A stretch of 64,000 nt of DNA from Entomortierella parvispora E1425. Lineage: Eukaryota; Fungi; Mortierellomycota. Of this stretch, positions 23,303-31,345 are shown one piece after another. Every line of letters starts with the position of its first letter. The stretch's first letter is position 1. The position numbers and the translations under genes were made by a program. The stretch spans positions 868,001-932,000 of the forward strand of contig BQFW01000006.1 in assembly GCA_020891255.1 (NCBI GenBank), read 5' to 3'. A model generated the notes under the pieces. That model searched no databases. It saw nothing but the letters and a program-made list of their open reading frames with translations, and was not told the origin of the DNA.

Positions 23303-26299
23303 ATGCTCAGGAGGAAAGGCCAGGTGTATAGAAGAGTCCTGGCCTTGACCCCCTTCCCAGGGCAAGCCCAAGGGTCCGGTGACAACGTTTTAAAGAAAAT
23401 GCCACACGCTGCCACTCTGTGCTCTATAGCCCACGTTCATGCCCGCTCATCCATAAAAGCAGGACCTACACTGGCGTGCCCATCGTTATCCTCAACATCT
23501 CTCGCGACCTCAACAACTATAACAAAACAGATCGGCCGATCATTACCCCACGGATCTTGCAGAAACATACCTCATCACCGCCATCACCGTCAAAGTCACT
23601 ATCAAGCGTTTTCAGGCACCCATAATACTTCAACGCGACACCACCCCCGATCATCCTATGTGGGATCCTCCCATCCTTCTTACGACCCTCAATTGGCTGC
23701 CTACATGGATCGGTGGGTCCGTGTTGTATTCTCAGGACACCGCCGTATGCACTCAAGTCTCGCCAAACCGATTCCGACATCAGTTTCTACTTCTTATACC
23801 GTCATCGACATCCCAACACAACAAATTCCTCTGGACTGTGAAGGCTCGACAACCTTAGATCCATTACCAACGGATCGTCGCGGTGGATCCACAGTCACTT
23901 CCAATGACAAGGAAGGAGGTTCCATGTCGCTATCAGAGTTTCGACAATGTTTGGACGCACTTCCAGTAGACGATCACGGCCTTGTTTTCGAGTTCAGGTC
24001 TCTCAAAAAAAGAAAACCAAATCAACAGCCAAAGCCATACATGTCAAAGCAAGATCAGGAAAAGATCGACCAATATTGGCAAGAATACCTGGCCATTGCC
24101 GAGCAAGACCGCATGGAGAGAGAAGCAGGCATCGCAAGAGAAGACGGAAATCAGTTGTCCAGGAGCGATTATACCCGGCTCATGCAGATCGTGCGCTATG
24201 GCCAACACCCCAAGGAAGCAATGCATAGGATTCTGGTCTTGAAAGACGCCATGGACAAGAGAGGGTTTCGTTTGACTCGTAAAATGGGCGAAATTGTGGC
24301 TCGAACCTATCTAAATCTCGGTTCCATTGAAAAGTCTATTCAGATCCATGATTGCATAGTGGAGCGAGTGGGCCGTGGCTCATGGGAGCATAAGAAGCTG
24401 CTATGGGCTATGGTCGATGGTTTTGCCGTCAACAGATTTTTCCAGCAAGGAGTCACCTTTTTGGATTCTCATGTTGTGGAGAGCGATCAGGATAGAGATC
24501 TTTATCTGGCGCTGCACCGGCGACTTTTAGCCTATAGACTGGATACTTCAAGCCCATCGGCCTTCTCTCAGTCTCGATTGAATGCGCTTCACGTATTCTA
24601 CAATCGCAAGTTCCCCCTCAGACTCAGCGACCTGACGCAAGCACTTGAGGTGATCAATAGCCAAACGGAAAAGGTTGAATCCCTGCTCGACTTTTCTACG
24701 ACCTCGGCTGGCACCTTGGTGAAAAGCGGGAACTCTGCGCTATTGACACCACTATTGGTCAGCTTGCTTCGGGCATACCAGTTACCTGAGGCAGCGCGCG
24801 TTCGATCTCTGATGTTACAGCAGAATGTTCCTCTGGATCGTGATGCTATTCGTCTGGAGTTCCTTCGATCTCTGGAGTCCTGTCCTGAGCGGGAGGAGCG
24901 TATCGGCGTCATGGAGCAGTGGGATCGTATGACATCAGACAATCCTCTATCGCTGGACGTAGAATACTCAGCTCTTCTTCGCTCCCGTTTCTACGAACTG
25001 GATCTTTCGGGAGCGCTTGCAGCGGCTCAGTACATGGCTGAGCAGGACTTGGCCGCGCACAAGATGGATTTCCGCAACCTTAATAGCCATATCATCAACT
25101 TTGGGTCACCAAAAGAGTTCCCGCTCTACCTTCAGATTCGCTATACCCTCCCAAAAGTGGCCGGACCTAATCTTCGTACCTATCGCCGATTGGTCTATGC
25201 AGCCTGTCGTCGTTCAGATCTTCATTCTGCCATGGATCTTTTCAAATTGATTCGCATTCGTCACCAGTCCTGGACCTTGGATACCCCCTTTTACAATGCC
25301 ATTATTTCCACCGCAGCGGCGATAGGTCATATCAACGTCGCCGAAAAGATGTTTCGATGCCTGCTGGAAAGTGGACTGGAGCCAGACCACTATTCGTTCG
25401 AGGGTTTGTTGAATGGCTATGGTCAAGTGGGCGATCTGGAGGCGGCGTTGATGATTCCCGAGCAGATGATCAAGCGCAAGCTTAGCCCAACGACGAAGAC
25501 TTTTAATTTGGTGATGAAGGCCTATCTGGGTGCCAGGAGAGACCTGTCAACGTCCCGCAAGTTGTTGAAGGTCATGCAGTTATCGCAAGGATCCGTTGCT
25601 CCAGATCTGGTGACATTCAATCAATTGCTGGAGGGATATAGACGCGTTGCGAATACGACGTGGTTTGACGACTATTTCGATCAATTTTTCGGAGAGCGAA
25701 GCCGTTGTCGGCGAGAACGACAGCGTCTTATTGGTATTGTCGGGTCCGATAAGAGTTTGGTCAAGGTCGACAAGGAGACTGCGAGGCTGATATGGCAGAG
25801 AAAAAGAGACGCTGGGTTGCTAGGACCCGAGAAAACAGATGACTGGACGTTGCTTATCCAACTCAAGCACTCTCTGTCACTCCCCAGCGTTGACCTGACG
25901 ACCGTTCAAGAGCTTTGGCAGGCTATCGAGCCTAAACTTGAGGGATTGCCCTGTTCCTCATCCCCTTCGCCTTCGCCGTCTCCCTCTTTCGCAGAAGATA
26001 CCGCATCCCGGGACTTGGAGAAAGGCACCAGTAAGATTGAGTCTCCCTTACCGGCGACCTATGTGCCATTCAAGAGACGCCTTGGACGGGAAACCTTTCT
26101 GCCTGCCACAGATCAGGAGCTCTTCCGTTTCACGACCCTGAGTCTTTTTCGGGACGCCTTCCATTCCCGTGGCCATCCTCGGGGCGTCAAACATATCGAT
26201 CGACTCTTGCGCAAACATTTTCCAACTCATCCTGAAGTGATGGCTCGATCAAATTCAAGGCCATCTGCCCCCAAGCTCCGTGTCGATACCCTCTCCTAG
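23303..26299 (+). CDS. Pentatricopeptide-repeat (PPR) protein, probably mitochondrial, single exon, 998 aa
   Basis: Tandem 35-aa PPR motifs (TPFYNAIISTAAAIG, PDHYSFEGLLNGYGQVG, PTTKTFNLVMKAY, PDLVTFNQLLEGY). Confidence 0.88.
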   Translation: MLRRKGQVYRRVLALTPFPGQAQGSGDNVLKKMPHAATLCSIAHVHARSSIKAGPTLACPSLSSTSLATSTTITKQIGRSLPHGSCRNIPHHRHHRQSHYQAFSGTHNTSTRHHPRSSYVGSSHPSYDPQLAAYMDRWVRVVFSGHRRMHSSLAKPIPTSVSTSYTVIDIPTQQIPLDCEGSTTLDPLPTDRRGGSTVTSNDKEGGSMSLSEFRQCLDALPVDDHGLVFEFRSLKKRKPNQQPKPYMSKQDQEKIDQYWQEYLAIAEQDRMEREAGIAREDGNQLSRSDYTRLMQIVRYGQHPKEAMHRILVLKDAMDKRGFRLTRKMGEIVARTYLNLGSIEKSIQIHDCIVERVGRGSWEHKKLLWAMVDGFAVNRFFQQGVTFLDSHVVESDQDRDLYLALHRRLLAYRLDTSSPSAFSQSRLNALHVFYNRKFPLRLSDLTQALEVINSQTEKVESLLDFSTTSAGTLVKSGNSALLTPLLVSLLRAYQLPEAARVRSLMLQQNVPLDRDAIRLEFLRSLESCPEREERIGVMEQWDRMTSDNPLSLDVEYSALLRSRFYELDLSGALAAAQYMAEQDLAAHKMDFRNLNSHIINFGSPKEFPLYLQIRYTLPKVAGPNLRTYRRLVYAACRRSDLHSAMDLFKLIRIRHQSWTLDTPFYNAIISTAAAIGHINVAEKMFRCLLESGLEPDHYSFEGLLNGYGQVGDLEAALMIPEQMIKRKLSPTTKTFNLVMKAYLGARRDLSTSRKLLKVMQLSQGSVAPDLVTFNQLLEGYRRVANTTWFDDYFDQFFGERSRCRRERQRLIGIVGSDKSLVKVDKETARLIWQRKRDAGLLGPEKTDDWTLLIQLKHSLSLPSVDLTTVQELWQAIEPKLEGLPCSSSPSPSPSPSFAEDTASRDLEKGTSKIESPLPATYVPFKRRLGRETFLPATDQELFRFTTLSLFRDAFHSRGHPRGVKHIDRLLRKHFPTHPEVMARSNSRPSAPKLRVDTLS

Positions 26300-26456
26300 G
26301 ACCAGGATTAGGGTCGCCGTCGCAGTCGCCAGACTCTTCTTTTTTAGAAAATAAAACATAGAGCCGCTTTTGCGTCTTCATAGAGTATATTCTTTATTGC
26401 TGCCCATGCAGAAGAAGGGGATAGGCGAAAACTTTTTTGTTCCTGATTTGAGCGTT

Positions 26457-26636
26457 TTAATTCAAATTGGGGCAGACTACGGCTGTGCAGAAGCAATCGG
26501 TCGCGCGGATGGTCTTGTGGCAAACAACGACGCCACGGCTAATATCGCAGCAACAGCATTGACTTGGCCCTGGCAAGGTAACGGCAAGTGCGCTTAGTAA
26601 AGTCATGGCAGTGCAAAAGATGGAGGCGAGCAGCAT
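26457..26636 (-). CDS. Small secreted cysteine-rich peptide, 59 aa (MLLASIFCTAMTLLSALAVTLPGPSQCCCCDISRGVVVCHKTIRATDCFCTAVVCPNLN); below the ORF-track cutoff
   Basis: Hand translation. ATG at 26636 in an aaaATG context after a CT-rich leader; hydrophobic signal-like N-terminus ending ALA; 8 Cys in the mature part; TAA at 26457-26459; AATAAA on the minus strand near 26395. Confidence 0.75.
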   Translation of the reverse strand: MLLASIFCTAMTLLSALAVTLPGPSQCCCCDISRGVVVCHKTIRATDCFCTAVVCPNLN

Positions 26637-27423
26637 TTTCTCTTCTTCTCCCCTTGAAAGCTTGAGAGTTATGTAGAGTGGAGTACAGGGAGATAGGGAG
26701 ACAGACAGAGAGAGACAGAGAGGATGGCAGAAAGACGAGAGACGTAGTAGATCAGCAGGACTGTATTTACACTACTATTTATGAGATCGAATAAGAGGAG
26801 AGGATAAGAGTTGATGAGATGTTTCGGGCAATTAGCAGAGCTCAACAAAATAGGCAAGGAGGTCATCATGATGAATATACTCTGATTCTGGATTTGAGGC
26901 AGACTGCATTGCCTATGATGAGGATTCACCGCTCTTTTGTCTAGATGGTGAGCCTGGAGCGCAAGCATCCTTTACTATCCTCTCCTCTCTCCGCTTATTA
27001 GACTTTATTCCAGTGCAAGGAAGGTAACGGCCAGGACAGGGCGAAGACCTCTGTGCTTTGAAGGCGGCCACCATTCGCTAGCATTCCTTGATGCACGGAC
27101 CAAGCGCGGTGGAAACCTACCTTTTTTTTTCTTTTCAATCGAATGTACACAGGCCTCAACGACTATCCCTGGAAGGTAGATCCTTTGCATCTTATATTCA
27201 AACCCATTGCAATGTAGCTCCCTCTCAATTCGCCAAATGACAACAACAACAACAAAAAAAAAGGGTGCTGGACGCTAGACAACAAAGCACGATGCAAAAT
27301 TTATTGCTGAAAGACAGAACGATCATCCATGATCTCTGGAGATAGGCAAGGTTTGATTGAAAGTCAAGGCAATGGTCGAGGATATGAAGAGCTACCAACT
27401 TCACCAGGCTCTGCTCCCTTCCA

Positions 27424-27972
27424 TCAGACTCTTGTGTATTCAAGGCCATCGTGCAAAGCCAAATGGAACTCGATCCGGTCCAAGGTGACCTTTGCAAACC
27501 GTGCCAAGGATTTCAATACGTCCAACTTTTTGTCGCGTACCATCTCCTCGCAGATCTCATCCTCTCCGTAATCGTTGCTGCTGCTGTCGCCGTTTTTGAT
27601 CTTGGAAAGGACGCGTTCAACAGTCAAGGGCTCTCCTTGACGAATAACCGCGATAGAGCGCAATTGTGATCTGACATAGCTATTCTCGTGATCAAGTCTG
27701 ATATCAAGCTCGATGACGTGACGACGATCCGCCTCATCCAGAAGCAGAGCCGAAGACATGTTCTGAAGGACGATGGCCTGTGTGATCACTCGCTGAACTA
27801 TGCCCAACACCCTGTCGCGCTCCTGTGGAAGATCATTGAAAAGATCTTCATACTCCAAGACTTGTATCATCCTTCTGAGAGGGTGTTGCTCGGGAAGGTG
27901 GGGCTGAATTTTGAGATCCAAAGGGCAGGCCCTGTATTTGATGGTTCTAGACACTGACATGGAACGAAACAT
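27424..27972 (-). CDS. Orphan hypothetical protein, 182 aa from ATG 27972, predicted mostly helical
   Basis: Open frame with globular, amphipathic-helix composition (MFRSMSVSRTIKY...LEYTRV); no family recognised. A possible upstream intron at 28022-28121 could extend or lead into it. Confidence 0.55.
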   Translation of the reverse strand: MFRSMSVSRTIKYRACPLDLKIQPHLPEQHPLRRMIQVLEYEDLFNDLPQERDRVLGIVQRVITQAIVLQNMSSALLLDEADRRHVIELDIRLDHENSYVRSQLRSIAVIRQGEPLTVERVLSKIKNGDSSSNDYGEDEICEEMVRDKKLDVLKSLARFAKVTLDRIEFHLALHDGLEYTRV

Positions 27973-28105
27973 GGTGAAGACGACGCTTGGGTTCTTGGTC
28001 TTGTTGATTTCAAAAAGCCATCTGAAAAGGGTGAAAATGAAAACGGACAAGAGTAGGAAGAACAAGATGGACCCTTGTGAGGTAGGGTCAGCAAGTTGCC
28101 AGATC

Positions 28106-28724
28106 AAATCACCTGATTTACAGAACGATAGTGTGCTAGATGGATCTGACGATCGGCAGTTTCTTGACGAGTTGGGCGAAAAACACAAATCCTTGAGAAA
28201 ATGACATGCACCGACGCTCCTTGATGAGAAAATCACAGCGCACTAGGTTTCGCATGCAGCCATTGACCTTTTACTAATCGACATTGCTGTTCAAAGTCAG
28301 GATCACCTGACACTAAGAGCAGCTTTCCTCGCAGATGGGTCTGAAGATCGGCAGTTTCTTGACGAGTTGGGCGAAAAACACAAATCCTTGAGAAAATGAC
28401 ATGAATCGACGCTCCTTGATAAGAAAATCACAGCGCGCCAGGTTTCGCATGCAGTCGATGACCTTTTACTAGTGGACATTGCTGTTCAAAGTCGGGATCA
28501 CCTGATTACATGAAAGGAACGACAAGAGATAACGATCGGCAATGTCCACTAGTAAAAGGTCATCGACTGCATGCGAAACCTGGCGCGCTGTGATTTTCTC
28601 ATCAAGGAGCGTCGATTCATGTCATTTTCTCAAGGATTTGTGTTTTTCGCCCAACTCGTCAAGAAACTGCCGATCGTCAGATCCATCTCGCACACGATCG
28701 TTTTTTTCTAGAGTCAGGTGATTT
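28106..28724. repeat. Triplicated ~170-bp segment: direct copies A (28138-28310) and B (28333-28505), period 195 nt, plus inverted copy C (28539-28702); B/C form a 150-bp inverted repeat with a 56-nt spacer
   Basis: Manual alignment: B 28333-28482 vs reverse complement of 28539-28688 differs at 3 positions; A vs B about 92% identical. Confidence 0.95.
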
Positions 28725-28849
28725 TGGCTTTAGAACATACAGGAGATGAAAGAAACCATGGTAAATGAGACAGAAGGGATAGGGCGAAGAGAAAGGTTAC
28801 TGATGAAAACTCAAAAGTGAAGGGGACGAAAGACCCCAGGGGGCAGGCA

Positions 28850-29221
28850 AGAGATGTTCTTACGCAAGCTGAAATGGCTCTCGTTTTCCCTCCTGCTGGC
28901 CACTGTATTCTTGTCAAAGTTCATCCACGTGAGGTCGTCACTGAGGCGCGTCCATTACCTTTTTTGCTGGCGGAATTGCTGGAAAGCCTCCACCGTGCCC
29001 CAAGCATCACAGAATGAAGAAAAAAAACAATCAGGCCTATTTGCAAGTCGTGCGCTCTTTTTTTTCGCTGTCTTCGGACAGTCCAGGCAGTAGGGAGTTA
29101 CTACATCTGCAAGCGGCAGAGAACCATCCACCTTGCTTTTTGCAAAATACAAATCAAGAGGGCTATTGGAGTCGAACCTCTTTTCGATGACGAGTATCCT
29201 CCTACTACACTTGATGGGCAA
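28850..29221 (-). pseudogene. Possible decayed coding fragment of unknown family
   Basis: ORF 28955-29221 continues in frame past a TAA with protein-like composition (VEAFQQFRQQKR*WTRLSDDLTWMNFDKNTV); no family recognised. Confidence 0.2.
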
Positions 29222-29840
29222 CGCCCTGAGTTATTCTAAGCCTGGTCTTCGTCATCTCTGCATATCCTGCGGATCGGTATTTGCTGTAGAACGTGTGCAC
29301 AGACAGATACAAGGGCACGGAGAGATATATGTTTGCATTAAGTCTACCAATTGGTCCTTCCAATGGTCTAAACGCGGTGCAATCAATCTTGACCCTGGCG
29401 CAAATCGGGGCTGTGGAGTGCATCGCTGACTGCTATATACTCAGGGCATTACGATTCACAGTCCATCGAAATACCTACCTCCATCCTTTCTTTTTGATGA
29501 AGAACATATATTCAAATAAGTGCAACGGCAGTTGACCAATAACCGAGGTTCCCTCCAAACGACTGGCAAGATCATAATGAGGTCCACCATCCGAGCATGG
29601 ACCAGTATTGCGGACGGTCGTGCCTGCTTGAAGAACCTCTTCTTCCTTTGCCATACCCTTCTCTGCCTGCATCCAACACATTCAAACCAAATCAAAGTGG
29701 CTTCCGTATCCTTGTTTCTAAAATGTGCAAGCCAGTATTACATCACTTTTTGAAAAAAAAAAAAGGGAGTACTTTGTGCTGTGGAGGGGTTTTTTTATTT
29801 CTTTCCCAATCTCTTCTCCACTTTCGCCTCCTCTTTTATC

Positions 29841-30620
29841 ATGGAGTCGATCCCATCGTTAGTGGACCTCTGTCTTTCTCAAAGTCGCCCTAGCTCTCCT
29901 GACGCCGGTTGCAACATTTCAAACTTCAGTTTTACAGACTCGGATTCTAATCGACCACTCAGCTTTGGCCTCGACCTGTCCGACCCTGTTGCCCACAGCA
30001 TGGTCAAACACAACCAGCCCAAGGCATCGCCCCTTCGTCCCGTTATGGTCCCTTCCGATAGTGGCGGCCCTGCTCAGGAGATTTCCTCCGACGAAGGCAT
30101 CCGTCAGGTCCAGACCAACAGAAGTCCTATGGCCAGAGACAATCAGAACCAGCCCAATCCCTTGCCTCCACTATTTAGTGAGGCCTGCGCCCATCCCGAT
30201 GGATCCATGGCTCAAGAGCAGATCCAAGCCAGAGCCTCGCCAGTTTCTGCGATGATAGTCTACTCCAGGAGTGACCATGAAACTCGAGCTTTCAGGAGTA
30301 GAGCCAGCAACCCCAGCACCCCCACTGCCACTGCATTGGGCTCGGCAGATCCTGTGCGAGTCTATCCGGGTACAGGTTCGTTGCGTCAGTTGCAAGATTG
30401 GACTAAATCTGCGCTGTCGAGCCTGGAGAACGAGATTCAAATGAGCACAGGTCTGACAAAGTTGAAAATGGATGCGATTCAAACGACCGTCCGTCTGAAC
30501 GAGGCCATTGCAATGGCTCTGGAGCTGGACAGCGAGCTGAAGCAGCAACGGAAGAAAATCGAGGAATTGGAGGAGGCTCTGGAGGCTCTTCCAAGTACGA
30601 ATTCAGGACGGAAGCGCTAA
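29841..30620 (+). CDS. Orphan hypothetical protein, 259 aa, disordered N-terminus and C-terminal coiled coil
   Basis: ATG 29841 after a pyrimidine-rich leader; heptad-like LDSELKQQRKKIEELEEALEAL. Confidence 0.6.
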   Translation: MESIPSLVDLCLSQSRPSSPDAGCNISNFSFTDSDSNRPLSFGLDLSDPVAHSMVKHNQPKASPLRPVMVPSDSGGPAQEISSDEGIRQVQTNRSPMARDNQNQPNPLPPLFSEACAHPDGSMAQEQIQARASPVSAMIVYSRSDHETRAFRSRASNPSTPTATALGSADPVRVYPGTGSLRQLQDWTKSALSSLENEIQMSTGLTKLKMDAIQTTVRLNEAIAMALELDSELKQQRKKIEELEEALEALPSTNSGRKR

Positions 30621-30936
30621 GGAATGACAAGGACTTGGGTTCGGGGTGGAAAAACAAGCACGTTCCCTGGTAAAAAAGAGGCCTATACTATATGTCCCTT
30701 CCCTCCCTGCGGTTCAATATACAGCTGCAGCTGTAGCACCACATCAACATGGCTCATCAACTTGTTCAGTTCCAATCCAAAAACAAGTATCCTTTCCATG
30801 GATCAAAATGAATAATTGACTATTTCTTGGTTTTAATATGTTGCTGAAAATGTGAATGATCCGTTCTCTTTCTGCTGCTGTTGTAGTTGCTGTTTGTCGG
30901 AAACGACATTCCTTCTTATCGGCTTGTGTTTTTGAT

Positions 30937-31345
30937 TTATGATGATGCTGATGGTGCTGATGACTCGGCGTTGGTCTGATGGTCGGTAACATGGCTAGGC
31001 AGCTTGATATCTGAAAAGTCGTCCTGACGAACAGCCATGATGGAGTAGGCATCTATTACACAAGAAAGTAGCAAAAAATATTAGTCTACCTGGTTGCAAT
31101 GTTCCTACTTGCTCATCCAAACTCTGCTTCAGGGTTGTCATCTCGACATGTCTCCAGGACATATCAGAGGAAAAGAAGTAGGAAGGCAAAAAAAAAGTAA
31201 GTTGCGTACAAACGGTGCCACAGAAGGCAATGAGACCGAGACCGGTGAGTGTGTTCCTGACTCGGAATGGGGCGGTGGCACGTTCAAGGGCGGACGAACG
31301 CTTGAAGCCCTTCTCGTAGTATGATGTTGGCTTGGGGAAGATCAT
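30937..31345 (-). CDS. COA3: Cytochrome c oxidase assembly factor 3, 2 exons
   Basis: SALERATAPFRVRNTLTGLGL...GTV|YAYSIMAVRQDDFSDI, the COA3 pattern, after one GT-AG splice. Confidence 0.88.

Follow-up and report, generated by a model that had tools for sequence, protein, structure and literature searches.

An overlooked 59-codon gene of Entomortierella parvispora encodes a predicted secreted, single-module member of an uncharacterised CCCC-module protein family

The window analysed here is a 64,000-nucleotide stretch of the Entomortierella parvispora E1425 genome, and positions 26457–26636 on its minus strand hold an intact reading frame of 59 codons followed by TAA, with the ATG at 26636–26634 and the stop codon at 26459–26457. 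The coordinates, the strand and the 59-residue sequence are exactly those quoted in the original prediction, and the cysteine spacing claimed there, CCCC-x8-C-x8-CxC-x4-C, is likewise right: the CCCC run occupies residues 27–30 and is followed by Cys39, Cys48, Cys50 and Cys55. The product reads MLLASIFCTAMTLLSALA-VTLPGPSQ-CCCCDISRGVVVCHKTIRATDCFCTAVVC-PNLN. Residues 1–18, MLLASIFCTAMTLLSALA (26583–26636, minus strand), form a predicted signal peptide which lines up with the hydrophobic N-termini of the homologs, in keeping with the signal-like N-terminus described earlier; cleavage would follow the sequence ALA, with small residues at positions −3 and −1 of the putative cleavage point, and a ninth cysteine, residue 8, lies within this hydrophobic segment. 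On the basis of alignment A1 and of the AF2 model described below, the predicted mature peptide comprises residues 19–59 (26460–26582, minus strand), which amount to 41 amino acids with eight cysteines. The Cys module proper, CCCCDISRGVVVCHKTIRATDCFCTAVVC, covers residues 27–55 (26472–26558, minus strand) and is the single match to the module regular expression in the window.

Immediately 5′ of the ATG lies a block, TTTCAAGGGGAGAAGAAGAGAAA (26637–26659, minus strand), with an A at −3, which is largely kept in the ortholog on metagenome contig L014 and is probably the 5′ untranslated region together with the start context. It is preceded by a CT-rich tract at about 26661–26745 on the same strand, a putative core promoter or leader, the equivalent of which in L014 is likewise CT-rich. 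Downstream, an AATAAA at 26393–26398 (minus strand), about 60 nt past the stop codon, is a candidate poly(A) signal; the 3′ flank around it has 38% identity to L014 and is therefore not conserved. The CT-rich leader and the downstream AATAAA of the original prediction are thus both located in the sequence. The convergent neighbour of the peptide gene is a pentatricopeptide-repeat (PPR) gene of 998 codons at 23303–26299 on the plus strand, the best named match of which is from Gryganskiella cystojenkinii (53% identity) and the close matches of which are all from Mortierellaceae, so that it marks the host as a member of that family. Upstream, on the same strand as the peptide gene, an orphan ORF at 27424–28236 has no Pfam family, is conserved in L014 (643–1194, plus strand) with 76% amino-acid identity, and is probably a real lineage-restricted gene.

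Two ways of attaching the 59-codon frame to a larger gene were considered and rejected. It is not the last exon of the orphan gene, since it starts with an ATG of its own and with a leader that is homologous to those of the family, and the orphan ORF stops about 790 nt upstream in both species. There is also no room for a downstream exon, since the PPR coding sequence ends at 26299, only 158 nt from the peptide stop. The frame at 26457–26636 is accordingly described as a complete single-exon coding sequence, on the evidence of the ORF itself, its homologs, its dN/dS and its collinearity with family members from Met1. It is also unannotated, as had been stated: neither the word-index nor the phmmer protein searches gave a self match, and the 59-residue product is absent from the protein collection in which the neighbouring PPR protein of the same genome is present (P0001).

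A lineage-specific insert of 4.7 kb (26300–30975), recognised by comparison with the loci of other Mortierellaceae, separates the PPR gene from Coa3 and contains the peptide gene together with the orphan gene and a dispersed repeat of about 150 bp. In M. alpina, Linnemannia elongata and Mortierella sp. GBA30 the gap between the PPR gene and Coa3 is only about 200–260 bp, and the order past the PPR gene is Coa3, BORCS6, deaminase, GalT and La, with which the window resumes collinearly at 30976. At least the PPR-adjacent part of the insert is common to L014, and the CCCC module is absent from the loci of four other Mortierellaceae, namely Gryganskiella cystojenkinii, M. alpina, L. elongata and Mortierella sp. 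GBA30. The placement of the gene at the edge of an accessory island holds in so far as the segment whose edge it occupies is specific to the lineage, but that segment is small. In G. cystojenkinii (L002, 9862–19862), the nearest named relative, the PPR ortholog is followed by five small genes that match no Pfam family and, after them, by a PEP mutase gene, and this region matches neither the window nor the Coa3–BORCS6–GalT block, the locus being rearranged.

The repeat is found at about 28140–28740 of the window in direct and inverted copies, and it recurs at 68–81% identity at no fewer than 75 other sites, often in arrays, on contigs C1, C3, C4, C5, C6, C9 and C12; it is a dispersed MITE-like or satellite-like element and not a hairpin specific to the locus. 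The peptide gene itself is single-copy. A reciprocal six-frame search of the whole genome (a 38.9-Mb assembly in 20 contigs) with Hypocreales members of the family returned only the peptide locus, with an E-value of 9.1e-11, and the search for paralogs suggested with the original prediction thus found none in its own genome.

The CCCC run alone is weak evidence for a gene, because TGY repeats are abundant in this genome. A relaxed TGY DNA pattern gave 2,617 matches compared with 218 in the control, the thousands of matches apparently stemming from long TGY-repeat tracts, and two junk ORFs near the peptide gene likewise read CCCC or CCCCC. The case for a gene therefore had to stand on homology and selection. 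If the frame were a chance ORF without a product, made of a TGY run and a hydrophobic stretch in DNA that is intergenic or antisense to the 3′ region of the PPR gene, the plentiful repeats, the CCCC runs in nearby junk ORFs, the shortness of the frame, its lack of annotation and the word-index protein search, which gave no candidate for the 59-residue query, would all be accounted for. The word-index result, however, was a failure of sensitivity and not an absence, since a protein of 70 residues with 58% identity (P0059), which shares several five-residue words with the query, is in the collection; for short Cys-rich queries, blanks of this kind are a poor guide to absence. An exhaustive phmmer search against 1.84 billion representative proteins gave 40 matches at E ≤ 1e-3 and seven at E ≤ 1e-10, the best with an E-value of 4.5e-18, and many contained two or three matched stretches. 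All eight cysteines, an Asp after the CCCC run and a Pro after the last Cys are conserved, and the homologs are annotated genes at a conserved pacC-adjacent locus rather than translation artefacts of a DNA repeat. Together with the low dN/dS and three-base periodicity of the substitutions described next, and with a steep drop in conservation at the stop codon, these results leave a chance origin scarcely credible, and they confirm that the 59-codon ORF is a real, selectively maintained gene.

The evidence for selection comes from a back-translated scan of JGI metagenome contigs, which yielded one close relative, L014 (Ga0302182_10014635, 3,587 bp). On this contig the orphan ORF is followed by the peptide gene and then by the C-terminal 371 codons of the PPR gene, an arrangement identical in order and orientation to that in the window. 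Nucleotide identity between the two is 76.5% over the ORF, 38% over the next 100 nt downstream and 55% upstream, so that conservation climbs just ahead of the ATG and collapses past the stop codon. A Nei–Gojobori count over 56 codons, with codons 9–11 left out and the L014 frame unrepaired, gave a pS of 0.61, a pN of 0.10 and a dN/dS of 0.087. The substitutions fall 8, 7 and 22 times at the three codon positions, and among the eight Cys codons of the module five show only synonymous differences (TGC/TGT). For the same pair of species the dN/dS is 0.138 for the PPR gene and 0.107 for the orphan ORF, values so similar to that of the peptide gene that the small ORF evolves as an ordinary constrained gene. 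Purifying selection, which had been named beforehand as a test of the prediction, is thus found against a syntenic ortholog and, on this sequence comparison, has acted on the peptide gene since before the split from the relative represented by L014.

The L014 copy (1919–2111) differs from that of the window in a 15-nt in-frame insertion ahead of the CCCC run and in the loss of 1 nt at codon 11, within the signal-peptide region, which puts the ATG out of frame with the Cys module; this deletion reflects either a fault of assembly or an inactivation that happened recently in the L014 lineage. It might be taken, along with the missing C-terminal xxAPT tail of the window peptide described below, as a sign that the gene is a decaying relic, acquired and once selected and now silent or being lost. 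The window copy, however, is intact from ATG to stop and has a good start context, and one missing nucleotide in a contig assembled from a metagenome may simply reflect faulty assembly. The protein is 76–80% conserved although synonymous sites are close to saturation, which requires purifying selection to have acted for a long time in both lineages, and decay is improbable as an account of the gene.

The homologs share one architecture, in which a hydrophobic leader (typically MRF…) and a short spacer precede from one to three copies of the module CCCC[DN]-x7/8-C-x4-11-CxC-x4-CP-xxAPT, joined by linkers rich in Pro, Thr and Ala. Altogether 90 modules were extracted from the homologs, 84 of which make up alignment A1. 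Seven Cys columns of this alignment (C10, C11, C12, C21, C30, C32 and C37) are invariant, while the eighth Cys (C9) and Pro38 are present in at least 90% of the modules, and the window peptide has them all; conserved Cys spacing in homologs, an outcome that the prediction had been staked on, is thereby established. The window product is collinear with family members from Met1 to its end in a full-length alignment, the hydrophobic signal-like leader standing directly ahead of the first module, and the similarity extends over the whole module, as seen both in the phmmer result and in the reciprocal match with P0059 (E 9.1e-11). The one departure is at the C-terminus, where the xxAPT(V/I) sequence after CP is lacking: the window peptide ends in CPNLN* four residues past CP, as does that of L014, and among the homologs only P0075 is similarly short. 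This tail is present in nearly all other modules and is a consensus feature rather than an invariant one. By sequence, the window gene belongs to an uncharacterised CCCC-module family, of which it is a single-module representative.

The named members, about 25 in number, are all from Hypocreales and are all filed as 'hypothetical protein'. They come from Metarhizium, Purpureocillium, Conoideocrella, Claviceps, Hirsutella, Escovopsis and Trichoderma, as well as from Sarocladium, Paramyrothecium, Cosmosporella, Thelonectria, Ilyonectria, Cylindrodendrum and many Fusarium. Most members are 130–320 residues long and have two or three modules, so that the description as a mini-protein family fits the 59-residue window product but not the bulk of its relatives. 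In six members (P0048, P0049, P0065, P0067, P0072 and P0086; one from Cosmosporella and one from Fusarium nematophilum) a Lys-Arg pair is located two residues before the first CCCC run, and this Kex2-like site suggests, by analogy with other fungal secreted peptides, that a propeptide may be removed ahead of module 1.

The family appears not to have been described by anyone. A profile search gave 27 matches, 18 of them new to the set and none with a precomputed Pfam domain; Pfam gave no family for the window peptide at E ≤ 10 and nothing relevant for 17 of its homologs, for which the E-value limit was 1 or 10. The family profile had no match among PDB sequences, the AF2 model had no fold match in the PDB by Foldseek or in a wide VIA-align comparison, searches of the ESM Atlas by features and by shape gave no usable match, and no paper on CCCC-module proteins was found in the literature. 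The claim that the cysteine framework is unlike those of known families is borne out by these searches. The claim of an undescribed family stands as regards a Pfam model, a structure or a paper, although dozens of Hypocreales entries named 'hypothetical protein' are already in the databases. The AF2 model of the 41 mature residues, which was built with alignment A1, has a mean pLDDT of 77 and predicts a β-hairpin formed by mature residues 9–13 and 18–22, in which the strand containing CCCCD would pair with the strand containing VVVCH.

In each of the six ascomycete loci that were fetched (L012, L013, L018, L019, L020 and L021), pacC is followed directly, after 0.4–2.1 kb and on its own strand, by a CCCC-module gene. 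These loci represent several hypocrealean families and include the most divergent family member. In Hypocreales the CCCC-module gene is one orthologous locus with a varying number of modules. The window gene has no such neighbour, being situated between the PPR gene and Coa3, and adjacency to pacC is a feature of orthology within Hypocreales and not a trait of the protein family. GCCARG, the PacC site, is more frequent than in shuffled sequences in three of five ascomycete upstream regions (8 compared with 2.8, 7 compared with 2.3, and 3 compared with 1.1), with no excess in the other two loci or in the window. The linkage to pacC and the GCCARG excess in three of the five loci each offer no more than a lead towards pH-dependent regulation.

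These distributions bear on how the gene came to be in a mortierellomycete. The restriction of the named members to a single ascomycete order, the absence of the module at the orthologous sites of other Mortierellaceae and the position within an insert that splits a conserved gene pair favour a transfer from an ascomycete into this Mortierellaceae lineage, a reading that we regard as somewhat better than an even bet and that draws on annotated proteomes, in which small ORFs of other Mucoromycota are easily missed. Any such transfer predates the split of the window and L014 species, between which synonymous sites are nearly saturated, and the base composition of the ORF now resembles that of the host. 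The alternative is ancient vertical inheritance, in which the gene predates the split of Mucoromycota and Dikarya and has been lost or left unannotated nearly everywhere, with no transfer involved. The window gene itself shows that such ORFs escape annotation, and its composition (GC 0.53, GC3 0.60) is like that of host genes and carries no trace of transfer, which speaks for vertical descent. The module tree, built on 41 columns and unrooted, places the window, L014 and unplaced P0075 sequences in one group (SH-aLRT 99), nested in a clade of first modules with an SH-aLRT of 98 on these weak data. A tree that cannot be rooted is compatible with descent accompanied by many losses and allows a root on the Mortierellaceae branch; its topology as it stands, however, has the Mortierellaceae sequences inside the module 1 clade and not outside the ascomycete modules. 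Descent would moreover have to explain why collections spanning the fungi gave about 25 named members from one order, why the module is missing at orthologous positions in four other Mortierellaceae genomes and why the gene is inside a 4.7-kb insert breaking a conserved gene pair. Vertical inheritance is thus the less probable history, though one to be taken seriously. The contig encoding P0075, the nearest relative outside Mortierellaceae (L011), has a GC content of 55%, lacks recognisable genes and does not match the genome of the window.

Taking the evidence together, the best explanation, to which we assign a probability of roughly 0.8, is that the locus holds an unannotated, intron-less, single-copy gene for a secreted CCCC-module mini-protein with four disulfides, which was likely acquired by transfer. 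The 59-residue product would enter the endoplasmic reticulum co-translationally by means of its 18-residue signal peptide, which would be cut near Ala18; the eight cysteines would then form four intramolecular disulfides around a β-hairpin core, and a stable mini-protein of about 41 residues would be secreted. The same gene could instead encode a metal-binding peptide in which the eight cysteines hold Cu(I) or Zn as thiolates in the manner of a metallothionein, so that the product would be a secreted or vesicular chelator or carrier, a possibility also raised in the original prediction. CCCC and CxC are typical metallothionein motifs, about 20% of the mature residues are Cys, and acidic or amide residues are conserved beside the Cys clusters. 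Metallothionein-like peptides, however, are normally cytosolic and without a signal peptide, whereas every member of the CCCC-module family starts with a hydrophobic signal-like leader, and the Pro/Thr-rich linkers of the multi-module members typify extracellular proteins. Cysteines in proteins that pass through the endoplasmic reticulum are normally oxidised, their number here is even and invariant at eight per module, and the AF2 model predicts an ordered hairpin and not a metal-dependent coil. Metal binding is for these reasons unlikely, with the disulfide-linked form of the peptide preferred.

As to what a secreted, disulfide-linked CCCC peptide might do, the arrangement of modules in tandem, joined by Pro/Thr linkers, suggests a module that binds something outside the cell, and a tentative best guess is a stable binding or antagonistic peptide with an antimicrobial, inhibitory or wall-binding role. 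A broader proposal, which is speculative and less likely than not, is that the module represents a new disulfide-rich mini-fold, with the four cysteines of the CCCC run on one β-strand and each bonded elsewhere in a 29-residue core; that it belongs to a pacC-linked and possibly pH-regulated secreted protein found across Hypocreales; and that one copy crossed between phyla and was kept as a free bioactive peptide of 41 residues. Were this so, the window peptide would amount to a 'minimal' version of the domain that occurs in nature and lends itself at once to synthesis and structural work.

The locus shows that a gene just below the usual 60-residue cutoff has been overlooked although selection acts on it no less strongly than on the genes beside it, and it leads to an eight-Cys framework that is strictly conserved across a fungal order and has no Pfam model, structure or publication. 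That order is rich in pathogens of insects, nematodes, plants and fungi and in biocontrol agents, with carriers in Metarhizium, Hirsutella, Purpureocillium, Claviceps, Fusarium, Trichoderma and Escovopsis. With a single module of 41 residues, the copy in Mortierellaceae is the shortest form found in nature and hence the easiest one with which to begin chemical synthesis, mapping of the disulfides, structure determination and screens for activity. Because it lies in a small insert that separates two otherwise adjacent conserved genes, it is also a clean candidate for gene transfer from one fungal phylum to another.

Among known systems, the CS-αβ defensins (such as plectasin), PAF/AFP proteins, hydrophobins and knottins are likewise short, secreted and even in Cys number, presumably disulfide-locked and protease-stable, and the genes of fungal small disulfide-rich secreted peptides are small and often overlooked in annotation, as here. 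The Cys framework of the window peptide is different from all four, and Pfam, PDB and fold comparisons, together with Cys spacing by inspection, place it outside the hydrophobins, CS-αβ defensins and PAF/AFP proteins. CFEM (PF05730) is also a fungal extracellular domain with eight cysteines after a signal peptide; it is about 60 residues long and has its cysteines spaced out, with no CCCC run. The CFEM HMM matched neither the window peptide (E ≤ 10) nor any of the 17 members searched (E ≤ 1 or ≤ 10), and the name CFEM automatically given to a few members in UniRef is therefore unsupported. Granulin/epithelin modules carry adjacent cysteines on β-hairpin strands and occur as tandem modules in one precursor, an analogy that serves only as a lead; their 12 cysteines, however, are arranged with CC pairs and not a CCCC run, and neither the profile search of the PDB nor VIA-align gave any sequence or structure match. 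The multi-module members resemble Kex2-processed repeat proteins (KEPs) and other polyprotein precursors in having a signal peptide followed by repeats, but most members have no dibasic site and their linkers are rich in Pro, Thr and Ala instead of being delimited by KR, and the window peptide, a single module without KR, does not belong with them.

The closest counterparts are the Hypocreales proteins themselves, which include that of Hirsutella rhossiliensis (XP_044723403.1; 70 residues, 58% identical to the window peptide), the three-module protein of Metarhizium rileyi (OAA38884.1) and those of Purpureocillium takamizusanense (XP_047837562.1), Fusarium oxysporum (BFJ69_g6171) and Trichoderma sp. 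(HDV62DRAFT_384972). The window protein differs from them in having one module without the xxAPT tail or a linker, in being encoded away from pacC and in belonging to another phylum, whereas it shares with them the signal-like leader, the spacer, the arrangement CCCC[DN]-x7/8-C-x4-11-CxC-x4-CP and identical Cys positions.
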